Assembly: GCA_965285935.1 (NCBI GenBank)
Contig: OZ260666.1
Span: 50,592,001 to 50,656,000, forward strand
Source: Ophelia neglecta
Lineage: Eukaryota
DNA length: 64,000 nt
Direction of reading: 5' to 3'
A program made the position numbers and the translations under genes. A model generated the notes under the pieces. That model was not told the origin of the DNA. It ran no database searches and was given only the letters and a program-made list of their open reading frames with translations. Numbering within the stretch: the first letter of the stretch is position 1; every line of letters begins with the position of its first letter. Shown here one piece after another: positions 7,201-40,200 of this stretch.

Positions 7201-10200
7201 TGACATTGACACTGCATGCTTGGTATCTCGGCAGTACATAAACATCACGGAAATATGATCAGTCCACTGAACAGTTTATCTAGATAATTGACCGGCATAC
7301 AGCATTTGTGCTTATTATGAATGCCTAGGCATGAAGGACTAAAAAGACAAATAGTTTGCCAACTAAAATTAATCGTGAAGGAGTCATCTTGCTGATGTAC
7401 ATGATTGACTGTCTAGGACGTTTTTTTTTACATATTTCCCGTCATTCGTTTAACCATGTGTTCTATTTTGTGTGTTCCTTGATCATGTATCTTCGTTATC
7501 AAGACAACAATTTAATTTCTGGGCCAATTGCGGCTACATCGTTTTTAAGTGTTTGACACTCAAATGGGGTTTAAAGAGACCATTTTATTGAAGTTTTTAT
7601 CAAATCCTCTTTAATTACATGGCAGTGAAATTGAAGAAAAGTAATCGCAATTCTGAGCCAATTGTGTTGGAGGGCCATTTCATATCAAGACATGACCAGA
7701 ATGAAGCCACATGACTTCCATTTAAGGCAGCGCGACGTTCTGTTCGGAATTGTGCGCTCTGTTATTTATAAATACGCTACCGTGCTAACTTACTGCAAAC
7801 TACATGGTGGCTAACTAGGACTAATTACAACTCAGAAACGCACCTTAAATTAATATTACTTAAGAATCCTCAGATGCCGAGTAGATAGTAGTAGGTCATT
7901 GTATGAGCTTACCTCGACATGGGTCGTTACTCTCCAGGAATTCCCGCAAGGTGGTCCATCCTCCTCCGACACGGACCATGACATTAGAGTTGAGAAATCG
8001 TACCAGACACATCTTCCCTTTCTCCCCCATCTGCATAAAACACAAAAAGTCTCATCTACAAGTTTATTCGTTTCTAACGAATTCTTAATATACTTTTGAG
8101 TGTAATTAAGCCAAATTCAACACGAGGTAAAAAGAATGTCTCGGATGTATTTCGTTCAACCACACAATTGTTATTTAGATTAATTACCTTGTATTTTCCT
8201 TCGCCGACCTTTTGCACTTTGAAGGCGTTTCGACACTGGCAGTGGGACACCTCGTGCTCGATCTCGTCGTGGATCAGTTCAGCGTTGGTAGCCGGTCGCT
8301 TGCCGGCTCGAAGACGGTTAGCTCGCTGAAAATAAACGAGCAACATACATGACCTAGTTATAAAATAGGTGATATAAGCGAGACCACAAACTGACAAACA
8401 TTGTAACTTCAATCACATGCGCAAACGTCTTTATAATAGTATACAAGGAAATACCAAACATTTGATGTGACTACTGACTTACTAGTCTATCGGGGCGTAA
8501 TGCATTGACAAACTCCTGGTAGTCAATTTCTCCACAGTGCTTGTGGTCAAATATATCAAACACTGCGTTCATCTCGGTCTTATTTGTGGGAAATCCTGAA
8601 ATTTGAAGATATTGTTTACCATCATGCATAGTAGCATAATATAAATATGATTTATTGAATGGCAAGTTTTAACCTTGAGACAGACCATTTCGAATCATAT
8701 TTAGCAGACTTACTACTGGCGAGCATGCCCTCAACAAACTCCTTCCGGTTCAGCGTGCCATCTCCGTTTTTGTCCTGTCGTCGGAAGAAGTCCGTGATAC
8801 GGAACTTTTTAGCGCGGATCCACGATATGTAGCGCTGCCGCCAGAGATCGAAATCGAAATTTTTAAAGCTTTCCAATTCGAGGAGATGGTCTAGAGCGTC
8901 CTGTAGTTTCTTCTTCCGGTCGACGCTCATTCTCCAGACCGAGCGCCATTTGTTTTGTAGCGTGGTGACCCGCGGGCTGGGACTGTCCGTCTCGTTCAGT
9001 TTCCACTGGCTGCCTTGTAACTGCTTCCGTGTCGCCGTCGGGGCGGCGGTCAACTTAGTTAGCCGGTCTACGTCCTTGTTCTTGTTAGACAAGTCGTCAT
9101 GAAATTCTAAAATAGAAACAGATTGCCTCAACGTCTATATGCCTTGATGGAAATGCATGCATGGAATGATCAAAGTAGCACATTAACATGTTAAAGGTAC
9201 TCGCCCTGGGCCATTTGTGTATATATATGATAAAAGTTTGCAACTCGATAACAAAGCGTATTTACCTAAATGTTCCTTGACTAGAACTTCGGCCACCGTC
9301 AGGTCTTCAGGAATGGGGTCCTTTTCTTTGGTGGAGAGCAATGCCAGTGCCTCTGTCAACCAGGCCAGTAGCTCCTCCAGCAGGGCGGCGTTACCTGAGT
9401 TTTCAGAGTTATCAGATTGTCATACATTTCTGTTCAACACAGTTCTAAGAGTACGGAGAAAACAATAGAGATTGACCAATGACCAGACGAACCTTATTGG
9501 TTGAATAAGATACGTCTCAAATACTCATTAACATACATAGACTTATTAAAGGTTGGGCATATGATTTACCCCTGATATTTCTGAGAGCCTCTTGTAGCCT
9601 CTGGGAGCGCTGGTTGGAGCGGTTCATGGCTTGTTCCCAGCGTGTCTGTGTGATGGTCAGGTAATACTTGACAAATCGAGCCGCATTGGGATGACACGCC
9701 TGTAGAATCTCCTCGGCAAGGTACCTAATACGCTCAACGTTCGGCTGCTGGCCTCGCAAATCCTCTTGGAATTTCTAAAATAGTAGAATTTTTATAATTA
9801 TTTTGTTCTTACAACGGAACCAGATGGCTTAAACTTTATTTTAATCAACGCCAGTTCCTAGCACCAAGCGTTGTAAACAAGTTTAATTCTAGAAATTGGA
9901 CGGGAACTTTTAAATGTCGAAGGATCGGGTATTAAATCATGGAAAATATCTAGTTTGTTCTTACCTCGTGGTGTTCGATGAGATTAACGATGTTCTCCTC
10001 ATCTTCCGGAAGAGCTCGAAATTTGAGTTCGGCTTCGGCAGATGGCAGCCATTCCCGGACGACCTGCACTGCGTCATTGAAGTCCTCAGCCTGGCACAGA
10101 CCAACGAAAAATTATCAATTAATCATACACAACTGGTAAAATAATAATGATAAATTTTGTTCTAAAGAGAACATGCACCATTACCACGTTTTCTTCTTGG

Positions 10201-16200: not shown

Positions 16201-19200
16201 TAATGAAAACAAGCGATTTGATTAATAAAAAACAAGCTTAAGACTTAGACCTACGCAGATATAACCTGTTGCTACTTATATAACACGGAGGAAATGTACC
16301 ATTAAACAACCGAGAACTTAACAATGAAAGCAGACAAAACATTTAAGTATCAAGCCACTAAACACGAACTGATTCCATTGTAAACAAACACTACGAGCTA
16401 AAACATAAATGGAGAATAGTATACAAACCTCAAAATGTTCAAAAGATGCCTACAGATTAAATAGGATGCAACGATTCAGTCTTACACTCACTTATTGGTA
16501 CTAACATTATTTGACAACGTAACAAATACGAATAACTGAGTATCATAACTAAAAAAAAATTCATGCGTATAAGTTTAATAGTCTACTAAACTTAAACAAA
16601 AGCTTCAGTGGATAATAAATAAATATATATTCTAACATACAGAGACATGCAAAGCACGTGGTATAAATAAAACAGGTAATTCTCTGCATTCTTGTGATAC
16701 AACATACAAAGGGACAGGGAGGGGGGGGGGGGGGCTCTATTTCCGGTGCATTTTGGACATCCATGCATTTAGACTTGTCTACTATTATAGTTACCTTAAG
16801 CTCGTCCATGTCTTGTTTGACTTTAGATGGCGCTGCATTCGTGTATTTCTTTAACTTCCGCTCTCCATCTTCCAACCAATCACAGAGTCCCTTCCAGGCG
16901 TCATGAAACTATTAAAACAACATAACACTATGTTGGGTATTCGGCGGGTTAGTTCAATTTTAATATAATAAAGTATAACCGGCAAATGTTGGCTCATATC
17001 CAGATGGAGGTTCTAGATCTTACTCGTTTGTCTTCTTTATGAGCCTGTTGCAGTATTCTTCCTTTTTCGTCTGTTCTTCTGACCAGCTTCTTCCATCGTA
17101 GTTTGATTGATATCAGTAAGTTTTTAATGTAAACCGTGTCCTGCTTACGACCGAAGTATTTCAGGTAAGTGCCTGTCCTGTCCAGATTCTGCATGATCTC
17201 TCGATGTGCTTCAACGTCACTTCGGAAATCCTGAAAAGCATGACACTAACTTGAAGACGCAAATTCCAGACTAGAAGAAATTAATAGACATTTGATACAA
17301 CTGTAAACGTTTTAGTTTCGTTTGGTACTGCTTTAAGACACACTCACCCTGTGGTCTTGTATCTGTTTTAGAACCCTCTCGACTAGTTTGCTGGGATATT
17401 TAAAAGACCCTAGTACTTTCTCGGCATTGCTTAACCAGTCGGTGTGGATTTTTAACATGGCATGGAAGTCCCTCACGTTATTCAGATGCTCATCTAGTTT
17501 TCTCTGTAGGAATAATTAAAATGTAACTAGTTAGTACACGTTTACCGATGAATGATATTTCATACACTGGTAGTCTGTATATTCTAAGATATCAACTATG
17601 AAGCCCTATAGCTACGAGAAAAGGCTTATACCAACCTTCCTCCTTTCCGCCTTGTTCCGTGTGTCGAACATTTTTGTTTGCAGACGACTGAGATTCTCTC
17701 GCAAACTAATGGCGTCTTCCTCCCGACAACGGGCCAACATGTCTTCTCCGTTCAGTAACAGGGCTCTTCCTTCGTCTTCTTTGAGCTGTAACTCTCCATA
17801 CTTTGCCTGCACATTTTTGTGAAAAGTCATTACAACGTGGCATTATTAGCAATGAAAATGGGAAACGGCGGAAGGGAGAATGTAAAATATAATTATACTG
17901 TTTTGTACAAGCATATGGTGATTATAAAATTACTAAGCCGACTTGGGCAAACTTTCGGAATCAGTGTACCGGTAATTACCATAAACTTATCGAACTGTTT
18001 CTGCGCTGTGTCTGGCAGCGCTCCCATGGGACTGCTGGTGCGCAGGTCCACCCGGAACTCGTTCATCCACCTCAACAGATCCTCTACGTCTCCCATAAAG
18101 CCCTTCACTTCCTTAAGTCGGTCATGGAGCTCGTTCTGTTTATCGCGGGCCATCACATTTACAGTGTTGAATATCTCGTTTAGCTCCTCCATTTTTTCTT
18201 TCAATGGTGCATCCTTTTGCCCGGAACGTTCGACAAACTTGTCAACGGCCGTATTCAATTTCTTGATGGTTGGTTCGGCGTTAAGCATATCTCTTTGCAT
18301 CATCTAGGTCAGGAAAAGAGGTCATTGACCATGAGTTAAATATATCAATGATACAATATCTCACAGAAATCAAAGGAGTATTTAGTTACGCTTGCTTTTG
18401 GGGACATTGTTTGTGTACTGACTTTTATTTTTTTGAGATGGGTTTCTATGTATTTGGGATCGCCGTAGACGTAGTCTACTTGTGAGAGATCGGCCTCAGC
18501 CTGGGCCAGGAAGCCAAGAATGTCTTCTATGGCGTGGTCCAACTCTCCTAGCTGGATTAGAGAATCCTTCAACTGACGCTGAAAACAATTGAAATAGTTT
18601 GTTAACAAGGAGTGCAATAAAAACACTATTAACGCAGTATTTGTAATTTCAATATCAATCCTCAAAGTGAGAACCACTTATTTTTTTCCCGAGTTTAGAG
18701 TTTTTCTTTTATCTTTTGTATATGCCCACCCACCTCTCTGTCGGCGGTGTTGCGGAGCACATTGTTCCACCGCTCATTGATTTCCTTCACCTGGGGACTG
18801 AGGCCCTCGGCGGTAACGGGGCTGGCGTTCTTCAAATCGCTGGCATACTGGTTCAGGTTCTGAATGTCCACAAAGCGAGGGTTGGTGGTTACTTTGAACA
18901 CCTGCGTAAGAAAAGGATGAAAGTAATTATTCATTGGTGGACTGACAGATATATTCACTGAACAAATGCGCTGATTCACTTGTCTTTGAACAGTACACAG
19001 AAAAGAGACATCAATATGCTGAAGAAATAAATACCAATAAATACATTGACTTTATTAATTACTAATAGGATCCAAACATTCAGACTACACTACTTAGTGT
19101 TCATCCTTATTTGCATTTAATCAACAGTAATAGATACACATTACTGATTGATCGAGACATTTGTATGATGTGCACGATATAATATTAACTATGAAATTGT

Positions 19201-22200
19201 GAACACATATAGACCATTATGACCAGAACAAATAAAACAAAAATAAATTAAGGAACACGCCATGATGGGATCCAAAAAAGAATAAACTCAATAAAGTAGC
19301 GTGATTATATGTATGGTGAAGTTCTTTGAGGTGAGACAAACCTTTAGTTCTTCGATCTGAATGCGTACAGATCTCGGATCAGCTGACACTGGCGACATGT
19401 TGGAGAGTTTCTGCTCGGCTTTAGGTAGCCATGATGAGATAGTCTGTAGCAAAGGACACGATGAGACACGACACACAGGAAACAACTTAACTATCGAGGG
19501 CACTTAACATACTTATATCTAATACACACTTATGGTTACTGTTGGTGGGATGGTCCTTTACGTTGCAAAACATATATAAAATATGGACCAAACAAGAAAA
19601 ACCTCCATGATTAGAAATGCATCCGTGTATGAAACCCCCACGTATGATAACACACGATAATACAGTGAACTTAGCCCAAGAAACATACCTGGAGAACCTG
19701 GTCGAATTTCTGAGCCCTGTCTAAAGCAGTTTCGAGCTCCTCGTCTCTGTCTTGGATACTGTCGTGGATCTCTTCCAACATGTTATCAACATCCTACACA
19801 ATAAATATAATACAAGGTCACCGGTGACATGCAGATACAAGGTGAGTATATGAACAATCTTGGTGGTTGCTTTAGAGCAAGGTGCGATTGAAGCAACCGC
19901 GATATGATGAGGGTCTTCTCACCTCGAGATGTTTCTGTATTTCCATGCGACCAGGCACCCCACATAGAGAATTGAGGTGTTCCGCCGTCTTCCTGGCCTC
20001 AGAGATGGGATACTCGGCACGGTTCAGATCATCCTTGATTTGCTTTATAAATAAATAACATCAAATACAGCCTACATCCCTTACTATACCCTTTTAAGTG
20101 CGATTTCGATCAGTTTAATTTAAAACTGTGAAATATAAAGTAAAATCGATTTATCTAAGCTGGGTATACGTAAGACCTATCTATACCTCCAGTTCACGTT
20201 GTTGTTCCTGGATTGTCTGCGGATCGACTCCAGGTGAATCTTGTGACATTAGGTTGTCCTGTATGTCCCGGAGTGCCTGTACGGCGTCTTGCCAGTCGTG
20301 GCCGAACTTCTCTGCCACCCCGAGGGCCTCCTCCAAATCCCCCGAGCGAGCACGGGTCTGCTGGCGAATGTTTTCCTGGAGGGTATCCATATCCTGCAGC
20401 TTGGAGCGGAGGTCCTGGACTGTAAAGACAATTAAAATAGTACACGCTTTACATCTTCACGTACAATATAGTCAAGTTAACGCGTGTGTTCTATATATTT
20501 CCTAGGCCTATTTAAAACAGGCGATGATATCTGATGCGAAATACACGTTAGTCATAGTGTGTTGATGTTGAAAGTTTACGTACAATCTTCAATGTGTTCA
20601 GGAGGTTCTCCTTCTAATATACGACCAACTGCATCTTTGGTGTTCTGTATTGCCATCTGTCTTCTCTCTAGGTCATCAACAACACCCTGCAATAAACGAC
20701 AAAAGAGTCCACATCACCTCTGTATTGATATATACTCTGAAAATATGTATACGTGTTGGGAAATATGCTTACATTATTTTCGGATATCTGTTCCTTCAGA
20801 GCATGTGTATTGGCTGCAATAGGATCTGCATGCTCGACCTGATCGTTCAGGTAGTGTAGTTCTTCCAGCAGTCCATCGAGGGTGTCTCCGACCTACAAAT
20901 ACCATTCTTGTTTATAATTGGTCCAGCCTTCCATATTTCATTACCTCATATCATAGTGAATGCTTCTCTTAATGAAATTCGATTGCCGGCCAGACAACTT
21001 GATCATTTAAACACGTTCATCTTCAAGTATTCACCTCCGATGTGCTGCTTCTGAAGGCCTCGTCCAACTGGTTGAGTTTCTCGCGGACGGCTCCCTTCAC
21101 CTCGTCATACTTGGCATGGACATTGTCCACATCCTCCTTGATGTCACTCGCGTCCTCGTCAGTACACATTTCCATCAGCTCGTGTCCAGTGCTCACTAGG
21201 TCCTCAAGTAATGGCTTGTGGTCTTCTATGATACGCTGTGTGGTCTGAAAGGTAGCATGTAACATCGATAGTTAGTCTTAAAGTGCAGGCCAAACAGGTG
21301 TTTCGAAAGTGCAAAGTTAACGAATAATAAGATAGACAAAAACATCCACCTTTATCGTAAATATATGTGTGTAAAGGAGATGAGTAAGTACAGCGGAAAG
21401 GTAAGGAATAGATGGTGTAAGGAGAATAGTGAAGATCTTGTTTGGGGTAGAATTCCTGTTAGTAAATTTGTATTCAAACTAACTCCTGGAGGACCCTAGC
21501 TACATCTATCTAAACCCCCAATTGCTCCTTAATCCAGACTTATTATATTGTGACAATGCTAATGCTATCCTAAATAATCGTGATTGACACTTGTTGAGAC
21601 ATTCTTGGGCAGCCTAAATGATGATGGTTGGAATTGTTTTATACATTCTCGGGCTTATACCTGAAGGTACTCCTCGAATATTTTTGCGAGTCTTTCAGTT
21701 TCTTCATCTGGTTCGTCTTTTCCTTCTAATATAATACCAAGTGACTCGCTCACCACACTGCCTCCACTTGTCAGCCTCGGTCTGGTAGGAAACGTAAAGT
21801 AACCAAGGCTCCCCTGTGAGTGGCTGAGATCCATGAAAGGTTCAGGACTCCTTGGGTGAGAGCAACCCTCGTCCAGACTTGAGTCATTCCAGCGTACTTC
21901 TGAGAATACATCAGAATGGCGGGACCTGATTGGAATTCGTGAGGGTTTTGTAGGAGTGTTTGGAGGAGCCGACAGTTCAGGACCGTCTAGAGCTAAATGT
22001 AAAGCTGTAGGTATGTTTAAACTAGCGGTTTGAACGGCTGTACTGAGATCAACATATAAAACCATATCGTCATTTCGGGCCCTGGTTATGTTTTCAATAT
22101 TGCTGTTGGGTGAATTTCTAAATCTATGCCGTTGTGATGTGGGAATACGGGATGGTTTAGATATCGGCCAATTATTCTTTTTATCACCAGATCCAGCTTC

Positions 22201-25200
22201 TTTATCCTTGTGACAAGATTCTGTTGTTTTGGGGGGATCCAATGAGTTATTTTTGTCGAGATCAATCTGCAAATTCGCGGGTGCATTCACTAATTCTGGC
22301 TTTACTGCAATGCATACATTGACATTAACCGCTTCTTGTTCAAGTTGGTAATACGAATTGTTAGTCCGAATAGGATTTTCCTCGTCTTCATTAATACCCA
22401 GACCCATTGTATCAGGATTTTTAATAACAACCGCTGGTAGTATCAGAGGAAAAACCTCTTTCTTGGCTATATTCTTGTAAGTAGCTTCAGCGACTAGTAA
22501 ACTGCTTTGAGTACTCTTTTTATTGATTTCAGTCATACCCTCCTTCCTGTCAAAATGGTTTTCTTGAACACCTAAGTAACTATCCGTGCCCAAGAGCTGG
22601 TGTATCATTTGAAATGTTTCGATCGTACTTTCTGTGCTCTTAGGGAGAAGATATACTGCATCATCTTTGTCACTATTGTCAGTGTTGAGATCGTCCACAT
22701 TTCGGCCACCGCGAAACGACGGATTTTCATTTTCTGCTATGTAAGTGGAATTTTTTCCCGTGGCCTCGTCACCAACGACATTTACCGTTTCAAGTACAAT
22801 ATGTTTATATTGGGAGTCAAAATCGTCTCCGATGATCGCTTCCATATTTTTTGTTGCATGCAAAATATCCTGTATATGACTGTTCATTATTTCCACTCCT
22901 TGTTCCATAACGACCACAGCACCAATGTCTAGGTTGACAGGTAAGGGTTGGTTAGCGTTTGAATGGATTCGGTCAGAATCATCAGATTTGACCTGAGCAA
23001 CAGGGGCAGCAATTCCAACGTCGCTTTCTCGTCGTTCGTCGTTTTCGTTATAGGTAGTTATGCGTGCTTTATCAGTGAATGATTCATCGAGTCCCTCAAT
23101 ACCCAAGATGGTAACTTCGATGTTCTCTCCCTCATCCAAAATGTTACTACCTTCCTCATTATCAGATTCATTTTCACAACTTTCTTCATTACTATAATGA
23201 TCATCATTGAGTTTACTCGCTTTTAGTGCTGACGAGATATTGGTAAGGCAACCGTTGCCGTTTGTTATATTTGGCTCAGTAAATGCAAATCTATCACACG
23301 TTTCAATCGACCCGGCCAAGATTTTGTCACCAAGAGCAGCCACCAACTTATCGGCTTCACGAAAGCCCGAAAGAAATTGGCCGCCTGATGGAACAAATTG
23401 ACGTTCATCCTCTAGTTCTGCGTCTACAGCAGGCCGCTCTGCCTGCACCACAAACATAGCATTATTATGATCATTACAGTTATAGTTTAGTTTCTGATCT
23501 CTTTCATTGCCATGAAGATATTCGTCCATTACAACATGCGTTGTTGCGCCTTTCTTAGATTCACCATTTTCCATAGAATCAGAGTAGTCACCTTTCCTAC
23601 CGTCGGTTTTGTTTCCGTGGCAGATGGCGTTGTTTGATAATTCTAATTTCGAGACATCGAGTTCTTCTGTTCCTAACCCAACATGATATTCCTCCGACAT
23701 ACCTGATATGTCGATGTTTTCTGATTGTGGTTTCGTCTTTGCTTCAGGCTGACATCCATAAAGAAGAATGTGATCAGGTTCGTCATTCTCGGTAGAATCA
23801 GCGTAGTCAACATTCCAACTGTCGGTCTTGTTTTCGTGACTGTCGGTCTTGTTTTCGTAATAATCTCTCTTTAATAATTGTAATGGAGAAATATCATGTT
23901 CTTCAGTTCATACTCCAACTAGACATTCCTCCGACATGCTTGGAATGTCAACGCTTCCTGAATGTGGCTTAGTCGATAATTCAGGTTTACCTTCATAGAC
24001 AGAAATAGTATTAATGCTTGATTTATAACCGTTATTGTGTTCCCCATACTGGCTGTCACTGCCCTGTTTTCCATGGGAACCAAAGGAGGCTCCCTCTGAG
24101 AGGTTTTTAATATTAGGAACAGGGGATAAGACATCTATTTCGCCAGAAAAGACATCATTGTTGTCCTCATAACACACATCACAAGCTTGTCCTATCGCAT
24201 TCATTCTATGTGTTTTATTCTCATCATCGTATACACTGCTGTCTTTGTCGTTGAATCTACTAGCCACATTCATGTCACGTAAAACGCCTACCTCCCGTTC
24301 CTCATTATCTTCACTGGAAGCGGGCAGTCCATCACTGTCGTGTCTCAAATCACATTCTGATTGCGGGTTAAAATATGCTGCAGTTGTTCGTTCTCCTGGT
24401 TTTTCTTGGAGGACTGTGATAATGCTCTTCTGCTTTTCGTTATGCGTACCCCCTATATGATCACAGCTCTGGTTTGGTACCTCCTGTATTAGCATGTTAT
24501 CTGTTATCACATCTGTCTGTTTGTCAAGAACTGTCAGCAAACTAAGTGATGAAGTTTTGATCCCAGCTACTAACTTTCTTTCGTAAGGTTCAGTAACTGG
24601 CTTTTCCACTTCACTGGTGTTCATATCCTCCACTTCTTCAGAAGAAACAAGATCCATCGCCGTTTTTAATCTATAAGCAGCATTCTGGTGGTCTCTCTCA
24701 TACTTCTCGGGGCTCCTAGAACCATCAATGCCATTGTCCTCGTCGTCATCGTTCCCACTGTCATGTTTGAAGGCTATGTTGCAGTAGTCATTCAATGCAT
24801 TGCGGTATGCATCATTTGAGGGCGAATTATTTAGCGTTGCATCTACTCGTTCATTTTGGCCATCTGACACATCAAGTACATTTAAGTTTACTTTACTTCT
24901 CTTCTCAGAAGTAGTTTTCGAATGCGTTACATGCTGAACATCAATATTTTGTACAAACTCTTCAACAGGTGAACTACTATTGTTTTGTTTTTCGCCAGAG
25001 TTAGTAAAGCGATCTCCGTAATTATCTTCTATTTTTAATTGACCATCTTGAATAGCACTATCAAAACAGACACCAGTTGAGCATATATCTATGTCACTCG
25101 GTGAGGTTGTCTTTTCTACAAACACGCAAATATTTACACATTCGTCAGTACTATCTTTTTCCAATGTTTCATTGGACTCGGAAATAATTGTTCCACTTAT

Positions 25201-28200
25201 ACGAAATTCATTTTCATGTTGTTTAATACCACGATGGTTTTCAGTCTTTATCTGATTTTTGACGATATCTAGTTCGACCACATCTAATTCATTTAATTTG
25301 TCCTTCATGCCTCTATCTACGCAATCATCAAAAATATTGCTGGCCTCAACGTTCTTAGCTAGTGCTGTTTTAACCTTAAAATTATTGCAACATTCATCCA
25401 CTGAATAGCTTGACTTTTTGTTATATTTTATTTTGGTATCTACATTACAAAATACTTCATATCCTAATGCGATATCTGGTGAATTATTCTGTTGGCTTTC
25501 GCCATGTCTGTCGTAGCTAACGATCGGTGGTGGAGGATAAGTTTCATTGTCTTTTTCCGTTGAGCCAACATCCATTTTGTCCTCAATCACATCCCTGAAA
25601 ACAGAGGAACCATAGGAAGATGCAGCGGAACCTTCAAAACTGGATTCAATTTTATCGGTCGTTTTAATGATGTTTGTATCTTGCTGATCTGAGCACTCAC
25701 TGTAAGGTGATTCTGGAAGATCAGCACGGGTTGTATCTCTGCTAAACGACGATCGACTGTCTACCGGGTCTCCAACCAAAATGCCTTCAGCTACTACTGC
25801 CTCGGTGCTTGCCGCCATCCTATCCCTAAGCTGGCCCTCTTCGGCGAAGGCGACATTGTGCTCATTCTGCTGTTGGCCCATACTACTGTTTTGAGCTTCT
25901 GTAATAGTTCGACTGCCGGTGTCAGGCAATAGATCGCGGCTGGCATCATATGCCATGACGTTTTCTTGCTTCTTTTCATGCACGTACTTACAATTATCCC
26001 TTTCTCTTTCATTATGGCCAGTATGGACACTCACCAGATTGTTTGGCAATTGAATGGGTTTAGACTTAAATTCCAATGGCATAAATTGAAATGACTCTAT
26101 ACCACGGTTGTCTTCAGCCTCTCGGGTCACTCCATTGAGCTCCTTGGCACTTTCCAACGAAAGAGTATCCATCTGCCCACCTGTTGTTATCTCTACATAC
26201 ATTACTTCTGCCGTATATTCGATAGTGTTGGAAGGGGATTGGTAGGGTAGAGGGTCTTCAGCTTTAGTTATGTGCGATAATATTTCAGCATCACCAAGGC
26301 GAGTACTAGGTTCAACTTGGGAGTCACTAACAATGACTTCTTTACTCCCCACACGAGATGTTAAAATGGGCTCGAGTACCTCGGGCTCTGTTAACTCCAA
26401 GGTGGAGGCGTCTATCAGTTGGTAGTGACTCGTGCTCTCCATGGTCCTATACCTGGCAGATGGCAGATTGTCTAGATCATAGTTGAAGGTCCACTTATCA
26501 AGCAACTTCCGATGGTCATCTCTGTCTTGCGTTTGTGAAATCACGGGGTCACCTTCTTCGTAATCAGAATCGCTAGAAGAACAGAAAGCGAGACCATCAA
26601 TGTGAAGCAGCTCCGACACCATTTTAACAGCTTCAGATTTAGTGTGTGCTTTAACATCAATTTCAAGCGGCATATTCTCAGCATCTTCACTTACATTTGA
26701 GGCTGCTTTATTTGAGCAAAGTTCCGGCTTGCGTCCGCTCTGCTTACTTTTCAAGGTCAAGTGACATATATCATCCTCCAAGAAATCACTACTTTCAGCA
26801 TCAGATATTTCTGGATCGTCGTCGCCTTCATGATCAATTGCCAGCTCCTCATCGTTGTGGTCATCGACTTCTCTAGCGATCACGTTGGAACCATGAAGGT
26901 CACTTTGTGATCTGTGAGAGTCCCAGAAAAGAGTTGTGTCTGCAAAAGGTTCAGCATGCAAAGACGTCAAGGAACGGACTCTTCTCTTTCTCCGCCCGCG
27001 TGAATGAAATCCCAGACGAGGGTAGGAGTAATTTCTGGGCAGTGTTTTCTCCATTACGAAATCTGGTGATGGCAAAGAGCGCCTTGATCCATTCGAGGAA
27101 TCAAGAGAGGGTTTGCGGTGTCGTGAAAAAGACAGAGGATCATCCGAGTCGACTAGCTCAGGCGTGCTGCCTCTCCCTCGATATATGTGAGAGTGGCCCA
27201 TCATGGACCATTTTACGGCCCCAAAACGGTCGGCTACTGTTATATCATTTGCGCACTCATACTCAGTGCGGCTGTTGTTGAAGGCTTCAAGGTCATCCAA
27301 TTCTCTCTGCAGCCGCTCTATGCGGCTAATATGTCCTTCAATGTCACAAGCGTTCAGATCTGGCAATGACAGGCGTTTCCGCGGTGATGCTTTCTGGAGG
27401 GGCAGTTCTGTATCAGGTACCTCCTGCACTCCTGGATCAGGTACGCGCTGCTCCTCGTCGTGGGGCAGCTTTCGCTTCCCGAAAGGGCCACATTTGATCA
27501 GGAATATTAAGTAAACTACGGAGATCATGGCGATTACTGCATATACATCTAAAGTCATCGATACCGTTAGCATATTGGTGTCAAACATGCTGATGTTATG
27601 ATTCCGAAAGTGTTGATGCCTGCTCTATCCTTATGAAGAGAAGAAATCCGTTTGTTGGCATCGGACACCTGTGGGGCACTATGTCTGCGCGCCCACGCAC
27701 ACACCATCATTCACACCAAGGGCTGAAAAAAAGTTGACTACGTGGATCTGTCTGACGATGGCTGGTCATGCAACCGTAGTCTCGTTCTGAACAACACAAC
27801 CTGCTACAGCTAAGCAGTTTTATAATTGAAAAACCAATAAAATTCAATATTGAACAATTGGGTAGCAGACTGTGAAGTATACGATGGCCTGAAACAACAG
27901 CTGGTGACTAGGAAACCAAGCATACCCTACAGTTTACATATGGGCTGTAGAATATAATGTGAGAACACAGCCATTTAATGCATTGGTGAAATACTTTTTG
28001 TTAGTACAACAAATGGCTACATCAATTGTTTGCCTTCTTCTGTATAAATGCGATGGTCCATTATTCAGATTAACCAGTACACAATTGCCTTAAAGGCCCG
28101 ATCTACCAACAGTTGTAAATCCATTATACGCTAGGTATCTTCAGATATCTCTATCGAATAGACTGCAGCAGATTTTCTAGATATAATCAATATTTACTGC

Positions 28201-31200
28201 AGCCAAAGTATTCAATTGTCTGATTGGTTAAACTGACACAATGCTGCCTGAGTGCAGGGAACATATGGCGGACTGTATGGAAGTATGTCGAGTGGCAACG
28301 GGATAACAGAGCATATGAGAGGCACAAAATAACTCATTACATACAATATAACGTACAGTTCATCCATCAACATCAAGACAGAGCAATAATCCGTTTCCTT
28401 ATTTAGGCTATTGTTTTTTAATCATCCAATAGGAGGTCGGGAAAGAGAGGGAGGGACATAGCAGTCGTTTATAGGTATTACGAGAATATCATCTACCTGG
28501 GCATTATTAATTGAAAAGATTAATTTCATTCAAATAGATACAGTTGGCAAAGTTGGCGATAGCTAGGAAAGGTGAAAGGAGTATGAAAAAGGCTTTAGCA
28601 GTAGTATCATCTAAAATATTACAAACCTAAATGATGCTATAATGTTAGAGTGAAGTATACTGCTCATCATTATCTACACAAAGTAGTGAAAAATAAATTG
28701 AAATTACCTTAGCGTTGTCCTGTTGTTTTTTCACTTGTTCGGTGTTGCCATCTGCCGGCACATCCAAAGACTCGATTTCAGCCTCGATCTCCCCGAGCCA
28801 GGACTGGAGGTCGCCGTGGGTCTCACTAAAGTGCGAGGCCAGCGGAAGTGCCTCCTCCAGCAGCTCAAGCCGCTCGAGACTCAGCTTACAAACCAGGTCG
28901 GCCTGGTTTCTGATAGTGTCCAGTTTGTTCTTGATGTCGTCTGCCTCCTCGTTTGTCGTCTCTCTCAGCATCTTGTTACATTTGTCGATGGTGTCGTTGA
29001 CGGCTCGTTTCTTGGCTTCCAGGTCCTCATGGAAGGACTTGTGGTCTCGGAGCTGTACCGCCAAGGTCTCCGGGTCGGTGGAGATGGGCTCTGCCGTATT
29101 AATATCATTCTCAGCCTTGTCTAGGTACTTTAACAAATCATCTATCTCGCGCAGAGCCTGCAAGCAAAATATGATTAGGCGATTTATGATAGAGAACACA
29201 ACGTAATTAAAAAAAAACCCTTAATAATATTGTTACTCGCATACGTCAATTCAAAATACGCACATGTTAAAATTAATGTAATTGTCCCCATGACATATTT
29301 TATCTAGAATGTTTGCTGATCACGAGCACTTACAGCGAAGGAGATCATCTGTACGAGGAGCTCCGTGAGGTCATGCCATTTGGCCTGCACGTCAGCCAGC
29401 GTCTCCCGAAGGCGGTTCTTGTCTCCCGTGCTAGGATCGTCTATCAGCTCCTTGCCAATCTTTTTAATTGTCTTCAGATCTATTTCCTTTGCCTTTTTCT
29501 GTCTGTAAAGATTTCTCGATTATTTCAAATGCAAAATGAGGTTTACAAATTTGCAATTAGAATGACATTTTGGTTAGATGGCATATTGCATTTTACAAGG
29601 TCCTGTTTCTGGTAATCGCAGTTCGTCTCAAAATTACGGTATTTGCTGAATACATAGATAAATTCTTGGAGCATAGCAAATGTATTCGTTTAATAAAAGT
29701 TATGGCTTAAATCAATTGAGCGACGCAGCTATTTCCTACGTCTGTCTAATACCAGAAGCTGCTACTCACTTGTACAGATTTTCTATTTTCTGCTTGAGGC
29801 TGGAATGGTCAAAGTCGGTGCTCTCCCGCTTGAGGCTACTGACGGCGTTGGTGAGCCACGACTCCAGCTGTTGGACGTTGCCATGAAGGGTTCCCAGCTT
29901 CCCGACAACCTCATCAAGCTCCTGTCCTCGGTCCTGGCTGCGGGTTATCAATAGGTCGTACCTAGAGGGAGTAAGTGACATGCTGGATAAAACTTAAACA
30001 TTTCACTGGGCGCTTAATTACATAAATGGAAGAATTTGAATCGCGGTGGCTTAGTAATAATTGCTAATTACCTAGCATTATATATAAATTGAGTTTGAGA
30101 GAAGCTGTAGACTACATAGCATTATATTAACCATCGGGTACTGACCTGTCGAGCAGCTCTCCGGCCCTGTCGTCTGCGCCATGAGTCTGACTCTGTTCCA
30201 CCACCGAGTCGATCTGGTTCCGCTGATGCTCGATATCACCTGTAATCACGCGGTGCGCTTGGATCTGTTCATTGAGTTTAGATCGGTCCAAACTCACCGG
30301 GTCCATATTCTCAAACATACCCTCGGTCTCTGACACCCACGCCAGTAGATTGTTCAGGTTATAGTTCACATCTTTTGATTGGAGGACTGCTGCGTTCAGT
30401 TTGTGCTGTTTATCTACTACACCTTCCTGTATCCTGTCGAAATGACCCTGGGCAGTGTCAATGGTATTTTGAATCTCCTGAGCTTTCGGTGAATCCCGGC
30501 AATCCAGTTCTTCCAGAATCTGCACAAGTTCGTGGCCAACATTTTGCAGGTCTTCCACACATTTTCCCTGCACAATGGCCTCGCCAGTGATGCTTTTAAG
30601 TTCCTCTAGCTGCTTCTTAGGGTCGAGACCCGGAGCCAACTCCGCACTACACGAGTTGATTCTCTCCTCGAGAGATGGCAGTGTCTGCTCCAGCTGCCCC
30701 TTCAGCTGGTTGTACTGTTTGTTTTTGGAGGCGGTGTCCGTTAGTTTCGCCATAAGATCCTCGCAGTCAGACAGTACCGCCTTGAACTTGTCGTTGGCAG
30801 CCTCGAGCTCCTTCTCCACAACGTCTTCCGGATCCTGCAACTTAGCGCCACCTACTTCCTTTGGCAAATGTCGGCGGTATGCGTCCGATTCTTTGGCATA
30901 TTCCTTGAAAATTGAAAGAGTGTTGATGTATTCTTCAGCGAAAATGAGTTAGAAAAGTGAACAGCTCATTCAAAATACAAGATAACGTCTCACTCAAACA
31001 AAGCACAAAAGGATATACAATAGAAGGTTATCAGCATCATTTCAGTATCTTTATTTTAAAATGAACATCGACTGTTTTACTACAACTTATCCCCTTAGCT
31101 AAATTGACTATGGAATAAGATACTAAGCTTGCGATTTCCCCTGTGATAGGGGCATGGGTGGCCCACATATCACATCTATTTCTGGTCTGTCGGCTATCAA

Positions 31201-34200: not shown

Positions 34201-37200
34201 TCCTACTTGTCATTTATAATATCCCAGACGCTTACATACAAGTCCCATACTATATTTTATAGAGCCGGCTTTGTATAAGTCGAGAGAATGAACACAATTT
34301 CAAAGTTACAGAGCGGGCACTACATACCGTGATTACTACAAGCACCCAAAGATAAGGCACAAGATATATATAACATGTATTAGTTAGCAACCGTAGAGCA
34401 CATGGGGCTATAGGCCGACTCATCACTTGGATCAACACCGGCCTAGTCAGTTTCACGTTTTAAGAACCAGTAACAAAGAACTGTGATAAATGTGGTAAAT
34501 AAATATATAAATAATCTGCCATACCTTAGCATGTTGCTGCACCTTTCGGCCAGATTTGGTTAATCCATTCAAACTGTCCTCCTTGGTCAGAACCACATCG
34601 TTGAAAGCCTGAAGTCAAATCAAAAGTAGACTTAACTGATCAGGAACTGTTGACTAAGCTTTGACCTGACATAGTTGGGTGTAGTATGTCACCGCGCGAT
34701 AAGCCGATGGCGCTGTGCTAATATACTACAGGGTACGGAGTGTGGAGACTGGTTAAGCCAGATAGCAGCTAACAATGCCTAGTGCTGACCCCTGGGGAAT
34801 GCGGCATGATAAAAATAACCACAATCAGGTAAAAAGTATCCTGATGACGTACTAGACAAATTATTACAAATCTTATATTTCTGAAGTGTTATCGCATTGT
34901 TCATAAAATATAGATATCCAACAATACAGATATACAACAATAGGCAGAAGAATACCCATTATTTATAATCAAGGGGCCTACACCGAGATCGAGAGGACCA
35001 GGCATTTTCGCTAGATCTTCTAATTTTTGTGCCCTGAGTTCTTATTCAGCATACATAACAGGGAATAATTTGATGCAATTCGATCTAGATTTTTTATTTC
35101 TTAAGCTAATTTAAATGCAGCCATGCGGAATCTTAATTAGTAATACTGATAAGATATCAATCATTCAAGTACTTAAATGGGCCCGGGCATTAGTCGTTTG
35201 ACAAGTTTTTTTTCACTTATTCAACTAAATTCCGGTAAAAACTTGCAACGCGATCCTAGCAGCCCTACAAATTTAAGTTGTACGTTGAATTGTTGGCCTC
35301 TTATAATGATTGATAAGTATCCTTCAGTCCTAAAGAGGAACTTTAGTACTCAACTCCATCATTGCCGATCTTTATTTTAAAAAACGACAACCTGCCTATC
35401 AAGCAATTGATGAATAATAGTAACCTTTGAATAATTAATCATGTCAAACGCTCCTGACTGCAATTTATTACACCATAACTAACTCTCACAAATATAACAG
35501 GTTCATCATTTCTCACCTTGAAGTTATTCTTCATTTTGTCCGGGTCGTTTGAATCTGCCACCGAGTTCTTAATGTCCGCTATTTCCTGGGTGGCTTCTCC
35601 GACCCAGGAGTCGAACACGTCGACGTTCTCGTGAAAGCGATCGAGATCTCCCAGCATCTCGTCCAGACGAGTTAGGCGAGAATCGAGCTGATTATTAACC
35701 TGTCGAATAGAAAAAAGAGGTAAGTATACAATAAATACATCATGTAAATGGTTTATTATCTAAGGGATAGATCGGATAGTCGAAAGGAAGTAATAGAAAC
35801 AAAAATAATCTAAGTTAAACCTGTAACAACATTGTTAATCAGGAACTAACAGTTACCTGCTGGACAATGTCTGTTAAAAGGGAAGCATGTATTCTATGTT
35901 TTTTTCTTTCTCGATTTACATGTTAGTCGGTTAAGTATGTACCTACCCAAACATAGTCAACAAACAAACAGAAAGTTCTCTGGACTCTTTTGATACTCTA
36001 TAATGATCAGTATTACAGGATTAGTGTCCAGCACCATTTCAAGTTGCACAAAATGCAAAACCAAAATCATAACTTGTATCATTATTTCGTATAAAAATGG
36101 GAATTCAATGCATCATGCAATGTGTATTAAGACACCTTCAAGTTTACTGGTTTCCTTTTAACCTATATGGAAATCGGTTTCATATTTCAAAACTTTTTGG
36201 GGACAACACCAAACCTAGAGCCCAAGGCTGCTAAAGCTACATCATTCTTTATTTTTATTAGGCATTCCCTACTGTATAAACCATTCCTCACCTTCCAAAT
36301 ATTATAAAACTCATAATGTAAATATTAGTGTTAAATGTATCTATAGTGAAATTGCAACCGCAAATTATATTGATGTTAATGTGTTCAACTATTAGACAAA
36401 GGAATTAAGTATCCAACTTTAATTCTAAGCTAAGTTTGTAAAGTTATATCACAAAGGCCTACATGCCTGTTAGTTTAACAAACATTAGTTACATTTGTAA
36501 ACTATTACTGGATGCAAAAAATATCAATGACTTCCTGATACACACAAGGTGCATCAACAATTTCAATGGAATATTCCATAAAGTTGGCAGTGAAATTTTT
36601 TGATAAACGAAGCAAGTATACATACCGCCTCGAATCTGACTTTGAGGTCGGAGGTGTTAAATCTGAGACGCTGGTACTGTTGAGAAGTGCCCGGATGTTT
36701 GGCAGCCTCCTTGTTGTTCTCAAGGAGCTCCTGAGCCTGGTCGACGAGGATCTGCAGCGACCCCTGGCGTTTATCTACCTCCTTCTTCAGATTCTATGAC
36801 ATAAAAGTGGGAAAAATGATAATATTACTAAATTAGAGTCAATCTATAATATAAAAAAAACAGTAAGTCGAACAAAGATCTGATAAAAACGCAAGGATAT
36901 GTATGAAAACTCTATTGAAAAGAGTGAGGGAACAAGAAAAAAATGAACTTTTTACTGTCTCCGTCATAGTATCTAATGATATTTGATTCAGAAGTACTCT
37001 CTTAATGTCATAATGATAATGATGATGGTGATGATGATGACCCTGATCATGTTTTAATGGGGTGCTTACCTTGTGTCCAACTTCCATGCGTTCCAGAGTC
37101 TCTGTATCTTGTGGGACGCGGCTGCTAGTTGCCAGGGCCTTCTCTATGTTAGTAACCCAGTCCAGGTTCTTCTTGGTGTTCATCAGAGAACGGACTATGT

Positions 37201-40200
37201 CCTCATCGTCCACGCAACATACATGGCCAGTCTTGGGATCCACCTTGACTACGGATTCTGGGGTGATGTAGCCGTTTGTAATTGCCTCTTTCAGCGGGAT
37301 CGTGTGACCGTCCGGGGTTACAAAGCTGCTGGTTTGGGCACTGATCTTACCATTGGCCAGGAGGTTTTTCAGCGGGGCGCGTTCCTCGATCAGTTCCTCT
37401 GGGTTAAGCCGGGGATTGATGATGCCCTTTCTGGTAGCATTTGCAATGCTTACCTCCAGGTTGGTGAGAGGATCTCTAAATTTGCCGGTAGAAGGATTGA
37501 ATTTACCCTCCTTGATAAGGGTGTCCAGCGATACCGGTTTGTTGGTGGCTGGGTCTACCACAAATACTACGGCAGGGTCTAGGAGGCCAGCATCAATCGC
37601 CTCTTTGACGGACATTTTACGTTTGGTCTCGGGATGGATGTATTTACCCGTGTTAGGATCAATAAGTCCCCGTTCCAAGAGATCCTGTAGGGAACCATTG
37701 CTGAGAGCAGCTAGCACAGTCTTGGCAGTGAGCGGCTCGATTAGACCTAGGCTGGAGGCCTCTGTAATAGGGAGACTTTGAGTAGTGGCAAGATTCACAT
37801 AATTTACATTGGGGATATCTAGTATACCGTCTAGCACGGCTTCCTCTACGGACACATCGTCCGCTGTTTCGGTGTTCTTCACTCCCTTCATACCGGTGTC
37901 CATGTTCTCCTTCAAAAACTTCAAAGCGGACAGCCGATTGGCAAGATTATCAGCTTGCACGTTGGGGTTTACAATCTTTCTATCGATGGCTTCAGCTAGA
38001 CCCATGTCGAGCCCAGTCTTGGGATCAGTGATCTTTCCGGTTTCTGGATCCCATTTATTGTTTTCAATGGCGGTACTAAGGGAAGACACTGTTCTACAAG
38101 GTACGTCATAGAAGAACACTTTATTTGGGTCAAGTCTATGCTGATTTATAGCATCAGCAAGGCACATGGATTTATTAGTTTTGGGGTCTACATATTTCCC
38201 TGTCTTCGGATTGATTTCACCCTTCTCAATGTATTTTGCCAGAGCGTAGGGTTCCATTGCACCAAGTAATTCTCTCAGAGTTTGTGGGTCGACTAGACCT
38301 AATTGAAGCGCATCCTGCAATGAATACCTGTCCCCATTGCTGTTTTCAATGCAGAGAGGATCCAGATGTAGGATGCCTTTCTCTATTGCCTCATCGATAG
38401 TCATGACTTCGCCCGTTGACCCGTCCTTAATTCCTCGTCTGTTTCCATCCAATCCGTCCCTGATGGACTCATAGATCGTGATATTAAGTGGTTTCTCTTG
38501 GTAACCATTTTCCACTGTGAGCAATTCCTCGAGATTTTGATTACCTAACACTTTGAGTATTCTGGCATTCATCAGACTAGGATTGTTTTTATCCCTCGTT
38601 GGATCGGCCAGCCGAGCCTTTAGGTATCCTCGTTTCAAAGCATCTTTGAGCGTGATTTCCTCTCCTGTCTTGGGATCTTTATATACCCCCTTTTCTATAT
38701 CAATCACGCCCCTTTGAACAGCCTCCTGTAGAGACATAAAGCGGCCATTTTGAGGATCACGAACCCCTAAAATGACAAGATCTTTATCGGCTAGTTTGGA
38801 CGCTGGTCCTCGAGGTCCATCTACGCGGTCTTTGGAATCGTCAACTATCTCTACTTCCAGCAACCCTTTATCAATAGCATCAGTGATTGACATTGAAACT
38901 CCTGCAACAAAAAAAGTACCGTAGAACTTCAAGTATCGTAATAGACAGACAGAAGATACAGCTAAAACGTTTTCTGATTCGTCTTAGCTATAAGAAACGA
39001 GAAATCTTCTTACCTGTAATGGGGTTGACATATGTGCCTTTTGCCTGGTCAATAATGCCCTTTTCTATTGCTTCAGCCACAGTGATTCGTCTCCCTATCA
39101 CAAATAAGTTCGTAATAGGAATATTAATAGAATTGATAAAACGCATATCAGTTGCAATATTATAAGGCCAGCAATAACCTTATCCGCAACATTATTATTT
39201 TGAAGAAGTCACAATTTAACCCTGCTTGGATTTCACCCAATTCCACTTTATTTGTTCATATTCTGTACAGTAAACATCCCAAAGTGAGATGGGATGTTCT
39301 CCGAACATAGTAATCCTTCATCCATAAAAGTGTGGGGATGGTGCATAAGGTATAGAGAGTCAGAGAGCAAAAGTCTAGCATCAATACTAATCACTGGACA
39401 CCATTTAAAACTAACTAATCCAAGTCAAAATTCAAAAATCGAAACTGCTGAATGCTCCCTCAATCAGAAAACAAACTCGTCGAAAGTTAAACTCCTCTCC
39501 CAAGCCGAAGAGTAGATGAGTTTGGCTTCAACATTCTTGTTTATGACCTACCAATTTATTTCATGATCAATGATGCAAATACAAGAAAATGAGATATAAA
39601 TATATGGATGTAAAGACGAATGTGATCACATTATAAACACAGTTCATTCACATCATGGTAATATAGTGAGTGTTCAGAAAGAAGCCGCTATGAAGGACGC
39701 AGTATTATTATCAACTCACCGGTGACGGGGTCAAGGACGTTCTGAACGCTGTATGAAACTGTTTCCATGGTAGTAGTGGTGGTTATGATGCCCTTCTTTA
39801 TGAGCTCCCCCATCTCGACCTTCTTGTTGGTGTACTCGACCAGAATCAGTCCACGGTTCATGGCTTCCGGAATGGGCATGCTCTCTCCGGTTTGCGGGTT
39901 CCGGTACAAACCCTGTGTTTGACTGATGATTCCTTCAGCGATGGCCTGAAATGTGGGAATTTGAATCTCTAAAACATGTATGAAGAATTTTTAAAGGGTC
40001 TGATCATGTAAATACTATTGATCATCGAGTGCCTTTATTTTTTCCGAACGGAATTGAAAAAACTTTTGCTAATCTAGTGTGCTTAATTATTTGCAATAGT
40101 ATCAAACCGACCATGTAGATACTAATCTCCTCATCAGATCGCGGGTCGATCACGCCTCGAATCACGAACGTCTGCGTCTCCTTGATGGTCTGCGAAGTTT

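Follow-up and report, generated by a model that had tools for sequence, protein, structure and literature searches.

A 64,000-nucleotide stretch of the Ophelia neglecta genome (assembly GCA_965285935.1, contig OZ260666.1, forward-strand positions 50,592,001 to 50,656,000; hereafter the window, whose own numbering is used throughout) carries, inside an intron of a spectraplakin-type gene, a reading frame of 1,976 codons interrupted by a single TGA. Judged from its sequence, this giant frame is genuine protein-coding sequence, and a second species has its counterpart in the corresponding intron. We propose that one of the two spectraplakin genes of this genome uses it as a giant alternative first exon, transcribed from a promoter inside a rod intron, a reading to which we give a probability of about 0.6. 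The annelid isoform predicted from it would consist, in this order, of a signal anchor, a conserved helix, an acidic spacer 700-1,400 residues long, SxIP motifs, about half of the rod, EF-hands and GAR. We see even odds that some annelids make such an isoform, which would be a dedicated organelle-to-microtubule tether.

A giant conserved reading frame inside the rod

Retranslation agreed with the earlier note on this DNA, which had been made from the letters and their open reading frames: on the minus strand, 27588..21661 forms one frame of 1,976 codons with a single stop, a TGA at 23908-23910, which splits the frame into 1,226 codons from the methionine at 27588 and 749 codons running to ...EEYLQ at 21661 (translation and open-frame listing). 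The intron that houses it, between the exon 29157..28708 and the exon at 21244, measures 7,463 nt, where the note had estimated about 7.5 kb, and both constitutive junctions are in phase 0. The two exons that border this intron are the following.

28708..29157, minus strand: upstream constitutive spectrin exon, ending ...QDNAK and followed by gtaatt, phase 0 (Pfam, translation)
21035..21244, minus strand: next constitutive exon, a spectrin repeat, phase 0 to 0, preceded by tttcag (Pfam); the predicted splice target of the giant frame

Plectin repeats and an SH3-like exon lie upstream of the frame, and spectrin, EF-hand and GAS2 exons lie downstream; therefore, going by domain content, the host gene is of the spectraplakin type and the giant frame sits within its rod, with Pfam spectrin matches on either side. 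The spectrin repeats, EF-hands and GAR announced by the earlier note were found downstream, and plectin repeats lie upstream of the giant frame.

An open frame of 1,976 codons would not arise by chance here, since stops number 108 and 247 in the two alternative frames of this strand across 27588..21661, against one in the giant frame. It is not a transposon either, since a Pfam scan matched no family and a search of the 762-Mb genome returned a single copy and no further ones. A transposon-encoded protein was thus rejected as a candidate (no transposase, reverse transcriptase or integrase in Pfam; one genome copy), and the similarity to a transposon protein that the earlier note had raised as a doubt appeared neither in Pfam nor in the genome copy count. 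More generally, an open frame due to chance, or a protein derived from a transposon by domestication or decay, might be suspected from the lack of a known domain and from the biased composition; we found no point that speaks for it, and it is refuted by the frame statistics, the single copy, the lack of a Pfam match and a syntenic conserved relative.

This relative, P0001, is the single phmmer match (E = 1.3e-80) obtained with the first 1,200 residues among 1.84 billion representative proteins. The sole database protein that matches the giant frame is itself an open frame predicted on a metagenome contig, and a conserved coding exon of 4-6 kb inside an intron may be overlooked by gene annotation. 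P0001 comprises 1,312 residues in an uninterrupted open frame; its contig, 58 kb in length, belongs to an ENA metagenome assembly, and residues 1-533 of P0001 align with residues 1-528 of the giant-frame protein. None of its 1,311 codons is a stop, and the other two frames contain 67 and 188. Moreover, it lies between orthologous spectrin exons and downstream of plectin repeats, in the same intron as here, which answers the earlier note's proposal to look for the same intron position in a related genome.

The divergence between the two loci is large, the constitutive exons sharing 70-83% DNA identity (66 of 71 residues are the same in the next constitutive exon) and the introns being not alignable. 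In the N-terminal 425 aligned codons, residue identity between the species is 47%, and 65% of the identical residues are written with a different codon, with four-fold sites agreeing in only 35%. It is therefore the protein that is conserved, not the DNA, and the maintenance of about 1,300-2,000 open codons at such divergence constitutes strong evidence of translation. No further relatives were recovered in a word-based search with the 749-residue piece (whose length window just left out P0001), nor anything beyond P0001 in word-based searches with a three-row profile and with the P0001 C-terminal region. Also, the JGI metagenome contigs and an ESM Atlas feature search gave no relatives, and phmmer against the 1.84 billion proteins detected no similarity between the giant frame and vertebrate proteins.

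A conserved start and a predicted signal anchor

The elements at the beginning of the frame, and just before it, are listed below.

27894..27910, minus strand: non-coding 17-mer with the E-box CAGCTG, a candidate promoter or enhancer element (relative, L003 9670-9686)
27625..27627, minus strand: in-frame TAG, 13 codons before the ATG (in the relative, a TAG 17 codons before)
27586..27588, minus strand: start codon ATG with A at -3 (ACCATG in the relative), conserved
26269..27588, minus strand: conserved N-terminal region of about 440 residues, 47% identical, disordered with short motif islands and nearly free of polymorphism
27496..27552, minus strand: predicted signal-anchor transmembrane (TM) helix, residues 13-31 (hydropathy; predicted helix 3-33)
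27469..27495, minus strand: basic flank KCGPFGKRK after the helix, of which K..G.F.KRK is kept in the relative
27259..27351, minus strand: juxtamembrane helix, residues 80-110, nearly invariant (AlphaFold2 pLDDT, the predicted local distance difference test, 80-89)

The ATG at 27588, its A at -3 and the in-frame TAG 13 codons upstream were all reproduced as the earlier note had given them. Between the upstream stop and the ATG lie 12-16 codons whose sequence is unrelated, and whose number differs, in the two species, and residue conservation (47% over the first 460 residues) starts at the ATG; therefore, initiation at this codon is favoured over read-in from the upstream exon. Read-in would turn the frame into a giant cassette exon, with 28708 spliced to an acceptor just past the upstream stop and the hydrophobic segment internal to the protein. 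For such an exon, candidate acceptors are present in frame and in phase 0 both here (...cataaggatag|AGC, preceded by a pyrimidine tract) and in the relative (...ttttatcag|GGA), and in spectraplakin genes an internal exon of giant size is nothing unusual, as the plakin-repeat exon shows. However, an in-frame AG is expected by chance in so short a stretch, the pyrimidine tract of the relative is poor, and a helix with a hydropathy of 2.5 would be odd within a cytosolic rod protein. Together with the start of conservation at the ATG, this makes the cassette exon highly improbable.

The 17-mer is the only collinear non-exonic exact match of at least 16 nt between the two loci, and its distance to the ATG is nearly the same in both, being 322 nt here and 331 nt in the relative. 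This would fit a regulatory element of an internal promoter. The earlier note had proposed such a promoter; the start of conservation at the ATG and the 17-mer agree with an internal start. Two shorter blocks, CACAGTCT and TGTTCAATATT, come after the 17-mer.

The helix at residues 13-31 reaches a Kyte-Doolittle mean of 2.51 over 19 residues (2.46 in the relative), being the only segment above 1.2 in the giant-frame protein, and each of the two species' proteins has a single strongly hydrophobic segment. No basic residue occurs in residues 1-12. The features of a type III signal anchor, namely a short uncharged N-terminus, one strongly hydrophobic helix of about 19 residues and a basic C-terminal flank, are present in the predicted sequence. 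Because the basic residues come after the helix, the positive-inside rule would place the remainder of the protein in the cytosol (N-out/C-in), and from these features we infer that the helix inserts as an N-out/C-in signal anchor in an organelle membrane. Its high hydrophobicity suggests a membrane of the endoplasmic reticulum (ER) type, and a signal anchor of the mitochondrial outer membrane could be an alternative destination. The earlier note's N-terminal hydrophobic helix followed by basic residues is thus confirmed, with a hydropathy of 2.5 and conservation in the relative, and at the site where it proposed a short coiled coil a helix is predicted, the one at residues 80-110. AlphaFold2 models of the first 460 and the last 230 residues are disordered except for three helices.

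An acidic spacer, SxIP motifs and a terminal helix

Beyond the conserved N-terminal region, the following elements make up the rest of the frame.

22189..26268, minus strand: acidic Ser/Asp/Glu/Asn-rich disordered spacer, fast-evolving (composition, alignment)
22141..22158, minus strand: KPSRIP, SxIP motif 1, residues 1811-1816 (TSRIP at the aligned place in the relative)
21931..21948, minus strand: KPSRIP, SxIP motif 2, residues 1881-1886, within an invariant PPNTPT(K/R)PSRIPIRSR block
21664..21705, minus strand: conserved terminal helix ..TERLAK...EYL, reaching the last codon of the exon (residues 216-229 of the 230 modelled, pLDDT 77-88)

The acidic, S/D/E/N-rich disordered region and the two KPSRIP motifs described in the earlier note were found again. 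Asp and Glu account for 18-23% of the spacer, whose net charge is -2 to -15 per 100 residues over 22189..26268, with values down to -30 in the comparison of the two proteins. The spacer is barely alignable between the species, its length (700-1,400 residues) differs by several hundred residues, and it carries lineage-specific in-frame duplications; it is constrained in frame and composition and not in sequence. A perfect 21-nt tandem duplication at 23818-23858, just after the TGA, repeats seven residues in frame, and an imperfect duplication of about 70 codons, at about 23590-24000, brackets the TGA.

In both species the SxIP motifs lie in a basic Ser/Pro-rich patch that is disordered in the model. 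According to the published rule (PMC4834103), an SxIP motif of the form (S/T)x(I/L)P has a basic residue in one of the four positions before it and is free of acidic neighbours. This context surrounds three of the four motifs, namely both motifs here and the second one of the relative, and in the first motif of the relative, TTSRIP, the preceding basic residue is absent. In the same genome, an EB1-family gene (C5:21481582-21481886, minus strand; L019/L020) has two adjacent exons that each contain a whole EB-homology domain (68 and 69 bits); the two are closely similar in sequence and look like mutually exclusive alternatives.

The terminal helix is the sole ordered element in the AlphaFold2 model of the last 230 residues. 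The last 17 residues of the exon were also compared with the end of the upstream constitutive exon, a likeness that was discarded because only 2 of 17 residues are identical.

Joining of the frame to the rod

21659..21660, minus strand: GT of the phase-0 donor, CAG|gtataa (AAG|gtgaat at the same codon in the relative)

The end of the frame at CAG|gtataa in phase 0, in register with the exon at 21244, was reproduced as claimed in the earlier note. Moreover, P0001 terminates in ...EYLK|gtgaat, its final codon being the one aligned with this donor, and the next exon starts TTQRII... in both species. The donors of the constitutive exons of the host are as variable as that of the giant frame, whose strength is within their range. 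Neither AATAAA nor ATTAAA occurs in the intron that follows, over 416 nt here and 500 nt in the relative. Since the position and phase of the donor are conserved, no canonical poly(A) signal is present and the terminal helix runs into the junction, we infer from the sequence of the two loci that the giant exon is spliced to the exon at 21244.

Observations that weigh against a spliced first exon

Several observations count against the first-exon reading, and the first of them concerns the same junction. In both species a stop comes one or two codons beyond the putative donor, and a nested gene complete in itself is therefore possible. This would be an independent single-exon gene on the host strand, encoding a membrane-anchored acidic SxIP protein that ends ...EYLQV (...EYLKVN in the relative), and it would explain why, in both species, the last conserved residue is so closely followed by the stop (1-2 codons); with anchor and EB motifs already aboard, such a protein could act alone, like STIM1. 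However, no canonical poly(A) signal precedes the next host exon in either species, and a poly(A) site on the host strand would shorten the host transcripts. Also, the GT falls after the same codon, in phase 0, at both loci, with the terminal helix extending to the very end, and nesting in the same intron would have had to persist across a divergence that erased intron similarity and altered three intron positions. An independent nested gene is therefore unlikely.

Other points of this kind are found along the whole proposed isoform. At the putative promoter, no CpG peak is present near 27.6-28 kb here, nor in the relative, which is uninformative, and a TATA-like box at 27824-27818 is not conserved. 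For the SxIP motifs, the predicted complex between two copies of an EB-homology exon of this genome and a 40-residue SxIP segment scored 0.27, with the mark at 0.34; it counts neither way. The family is known from two genomes only, and the protein collections searched hold no transcript-derived relative. Finally, the sequencing runs that contain the stretch are three, from one sample, with the library type unrecorded and none recorded as RNA.

The remaining points concern the stop inside the frame and the variation around it.

23908..23910, minus strand: in-frame TGA, codon 1227, aligned to GGA (Gly) of the adjoining repeat copy

TGA and GGA differ by a single G-to-T change. The stop was checked at the DNA level in the Logan contigs of the three runs (X1, X2 and X3), which come from one sample, possibly the assembly's own. 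It is present in the X1 and X2 contigs, all of whose differences are placed elsewhere (for X3, five differences are not itemised); being unchanged in X1 and X2, it is in the reads and is not a slip of the assembly. The TGA allele would give a truncated protein of 1,226 residues and its mRNA is probably unstable; without readthrough, no full-length product can come from this allele. A mini-intron that would excise the TGA was tried and rejected, because the best GT..AG pair (23990..23869, 122 nt) breaks the frame. As the frame stays open for 749 codons beyond the TGA and shows no indel variants, the nonsense change would be recent.

Variation among the contigs of this one sample amounts to about 55 variant sites in the 6 kb from 21650 to 27649 (about 0.9%), with no indels in the frame, and heterozygosity in the sequenced sample is high at the giant frame. 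The 40 listed variants, in the spacer and the C-terminal part, are 6 synonymous to 34 non-synonymous, which is near-neutral given an expectation of 21% for synonymous sites, and the conserved last 170 codons are not depleted, with 4 variants in 513 nt. By contrast with about 11 variants expected, the first 1.2 kb has at most one; therefore, the N-terminal module is under present-day constraint.

These data bear on whether the frame is a recently disabled relic in this species that is functional in the relative. The TGA confirmed in the reads, the ratio of the listed variants and the undepleted C-terminal 170 codons would be expected of a relic. Nonetheless, the 749 codons past the TGA have stayed open and free of indels, so the change must be very young or the allele polymorphic, and the strong depletion of variants in the first 400 codons indicates constraint at present on at least the N-terminal part. 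The question rests on one sequenced sample, and we regard a relic as decidedly unlikely; it would in any case be compatible with a first exon for the lineage as a whole. The tether isoform of the earlier note is partly supported: the conserved coding exon, the start, the anchor-like helix, the SxIP motif and the donor speak for it, and the TGA speaks against a full-length product from this allele.

A predicted organelle-to-microtubule tether

If the giant frame is a first exon, the transcript would start inside the rod intron and the N-terminal helix would anchor the protein in an organelle membrane, from which the long, flexible and polyanionic spacer would project into the cytosol. By analogy with the ER protein STIM1, the SxIP motifs would recruit EB at growing microtubule ends. 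Via the splice to 21244, the cytosolic part would be extended by the more distal spectrin repeats, by the EF-hands and by the GAR domain, which binds the microtubule lattice. Such a product would be devoid of the actin-binding, plakin and plakin-repeat parts and would tie a membrane to microtubules.

Spectraplakins diversify by alternative promoters. One of their mammalian isoforms, dystonin-a2, is considered membrane-anchored and is important for the integrity of the neuronal ER and Golgi. Dystonin-a2 (BPAG1a2) is a DST isoform with an N-terminal TM segment from an alternative first exon; it resides at the nuclear envelope, the ER and the Golgi, which it connects to microtubules (PMC3352950; PMC3308695). 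The claim of a TM segment is disputed in the literature. The predicted isoform resembles it in being a spectraplakin isoform with a membrane anchor supplied by an alternative first exon. However, the lead exon of dystonin-a2 is at the 5' end of its gene and the isoform keeps the actin-binding and plakin domains, whereas the giant exon lies deep in the rod, has 1,300-2,000 codons and contributes SxIP motifs of its own along with an acidic spacer, and its predicted product drops all upstream domains. A phmmer search of the 1.84 billion proteins gave no sequence similarity between the dystonin-a2 lead peptide and the giant frame. By the position of the exon, downstream of the plakin repeats, and by this lack of lead-peptide similarity, the giant frame is not of the dystonin-a2 type.

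The likeness to STIM1 consists of a membrane anchor combined with an SxIP motif that faces the cytosol within a basic sequence rich in Ser and Pro, a pairing that couples an organelle membrane to growing microtubule ends decorated with EB (PMC4834103). STIM1 differs in having a luminal Ca-sensing domain and neither spectrin rod nor GAR, and it has no homology to the giant frame.

Within the vertebrate spectraplakin genes, the legend of Fig. 1 of Voelzmann et al. (bioRxiv 10.1101/122010) mentions an extra exon that is common to DST and MACF1, uncharacterised and possibly an alternative start. No sequence similarity was detected between this exon and the giant frame. KIAA0754 is nested in human MACF1; in the literature on it no functional study was found, and the extra DST/MACF1 exon is uncharacterised there. 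Of the six described MACF1 isoforms, none has the anchor-spacer-SxIP design (PMC4914211).

Two further groups of proteins show part of the predicted arrangement. In the spectrin superfamily, internal promoters give rise to dystrophin Dp260, Dp140, Dp116 and Dp71 and to the short nesprins, in which unique first exons lead into the rod and the C-terminal modules are kept. Also, MACF1c and MACF1-4 are short isoforms, in this case with the plakin domain kept (PMC4914211). The first exons of these internal-promoter isoforms are short and carry no membrane anchor, unlike the giant exon. Giant ankyrin-G and ankyrin-B and Drosophila Ank2-XL are cytoskeletal linkers in which a single multi-kilobase exon encodes a spacer that is long, unstructured and quick to evolve. 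These exons are internal cassettes without a start codon or anchor, unlike the giant frame.

A literature search retrieved no description of the predicted architecture and no study of annelid spectraplakin isoforms; the earlier note likewise knew of no account of such an architecture. To the known diversity of spectraplakin isoforms through alternative promoters, the frame would add a giant anchor-spacer-SxIP exon. If the tether is real, it would be a second, independently built anchored spectraplakin, and organelle anchoring of the microtubule-binding end would be a recurrent solution. This isoform would drop actin binding and add EB motifs and a very long charged spacer, thereby joining the tip-attachment principle of STIM1 to the lattice-binding end of a spectraplakin, and it would offer a simple natural construct for studies of membrane-microtubule tethering.

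The host gene and its paralog

Besides the two exons that border the intron, the host gene has the following exons in the window.

39691-39990, minus strand: second plectin-repeat exon (Pfam Plectin, E = 3.6e-6)
36842..38983, minus strand: plectin-repeat exon, upstream of the giant frame (Pfam Plectin, E = 2.8e-46)
30948-28708, minus strand: spectrin exons upstream of the giant frame (Pfam)
7914..9134, minus strand: EF-hand and GAS2/GAR exons (EF-hand in the open frame 8655-9134; GAS2 at 7914-8274, 67.8 bits)

Upstream of the plectin repeats, an SH3-like plakin-domain exon (43574-43747) shows 45% identity to the paralog on C5 (E = 1.6e-18). A genome-wide scan for CH domains listed no match near C9:50.59-50.75 Mb, C9 being the contig of the window, and the same scan detected the CH exons of the C5 paralog. 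Also, the exons in the first 40 kb of this paralog, CH exons included, were used as tblastn queries and gave only weak matches in the adjoining positions 64001-154000 (C9:50656001-50746000). The spectraplakin on C9 may thus be one without a classical actin-binding domain, or the domain may be further off.

The second spectraplakin gene (G000:C5:84395450-84513320, plus strand) is complete, with CH exons, plectin-repeat frames and GAS2, and no counterpart of the giant frame was found in it. Its plectin-repeat open frames run without a stop for 3,753, 2,401 and 9,995 residues, the last of these being exceptional.

Finally, three short introns of the host gene downstream of the giant frame (19799-19921, 18576-18733 and 16905-17024, of about 120-160 nt) are missing in the ortholog of the relative, where the exons are continuous, which indicates intron gain or loss after the split of the two species.

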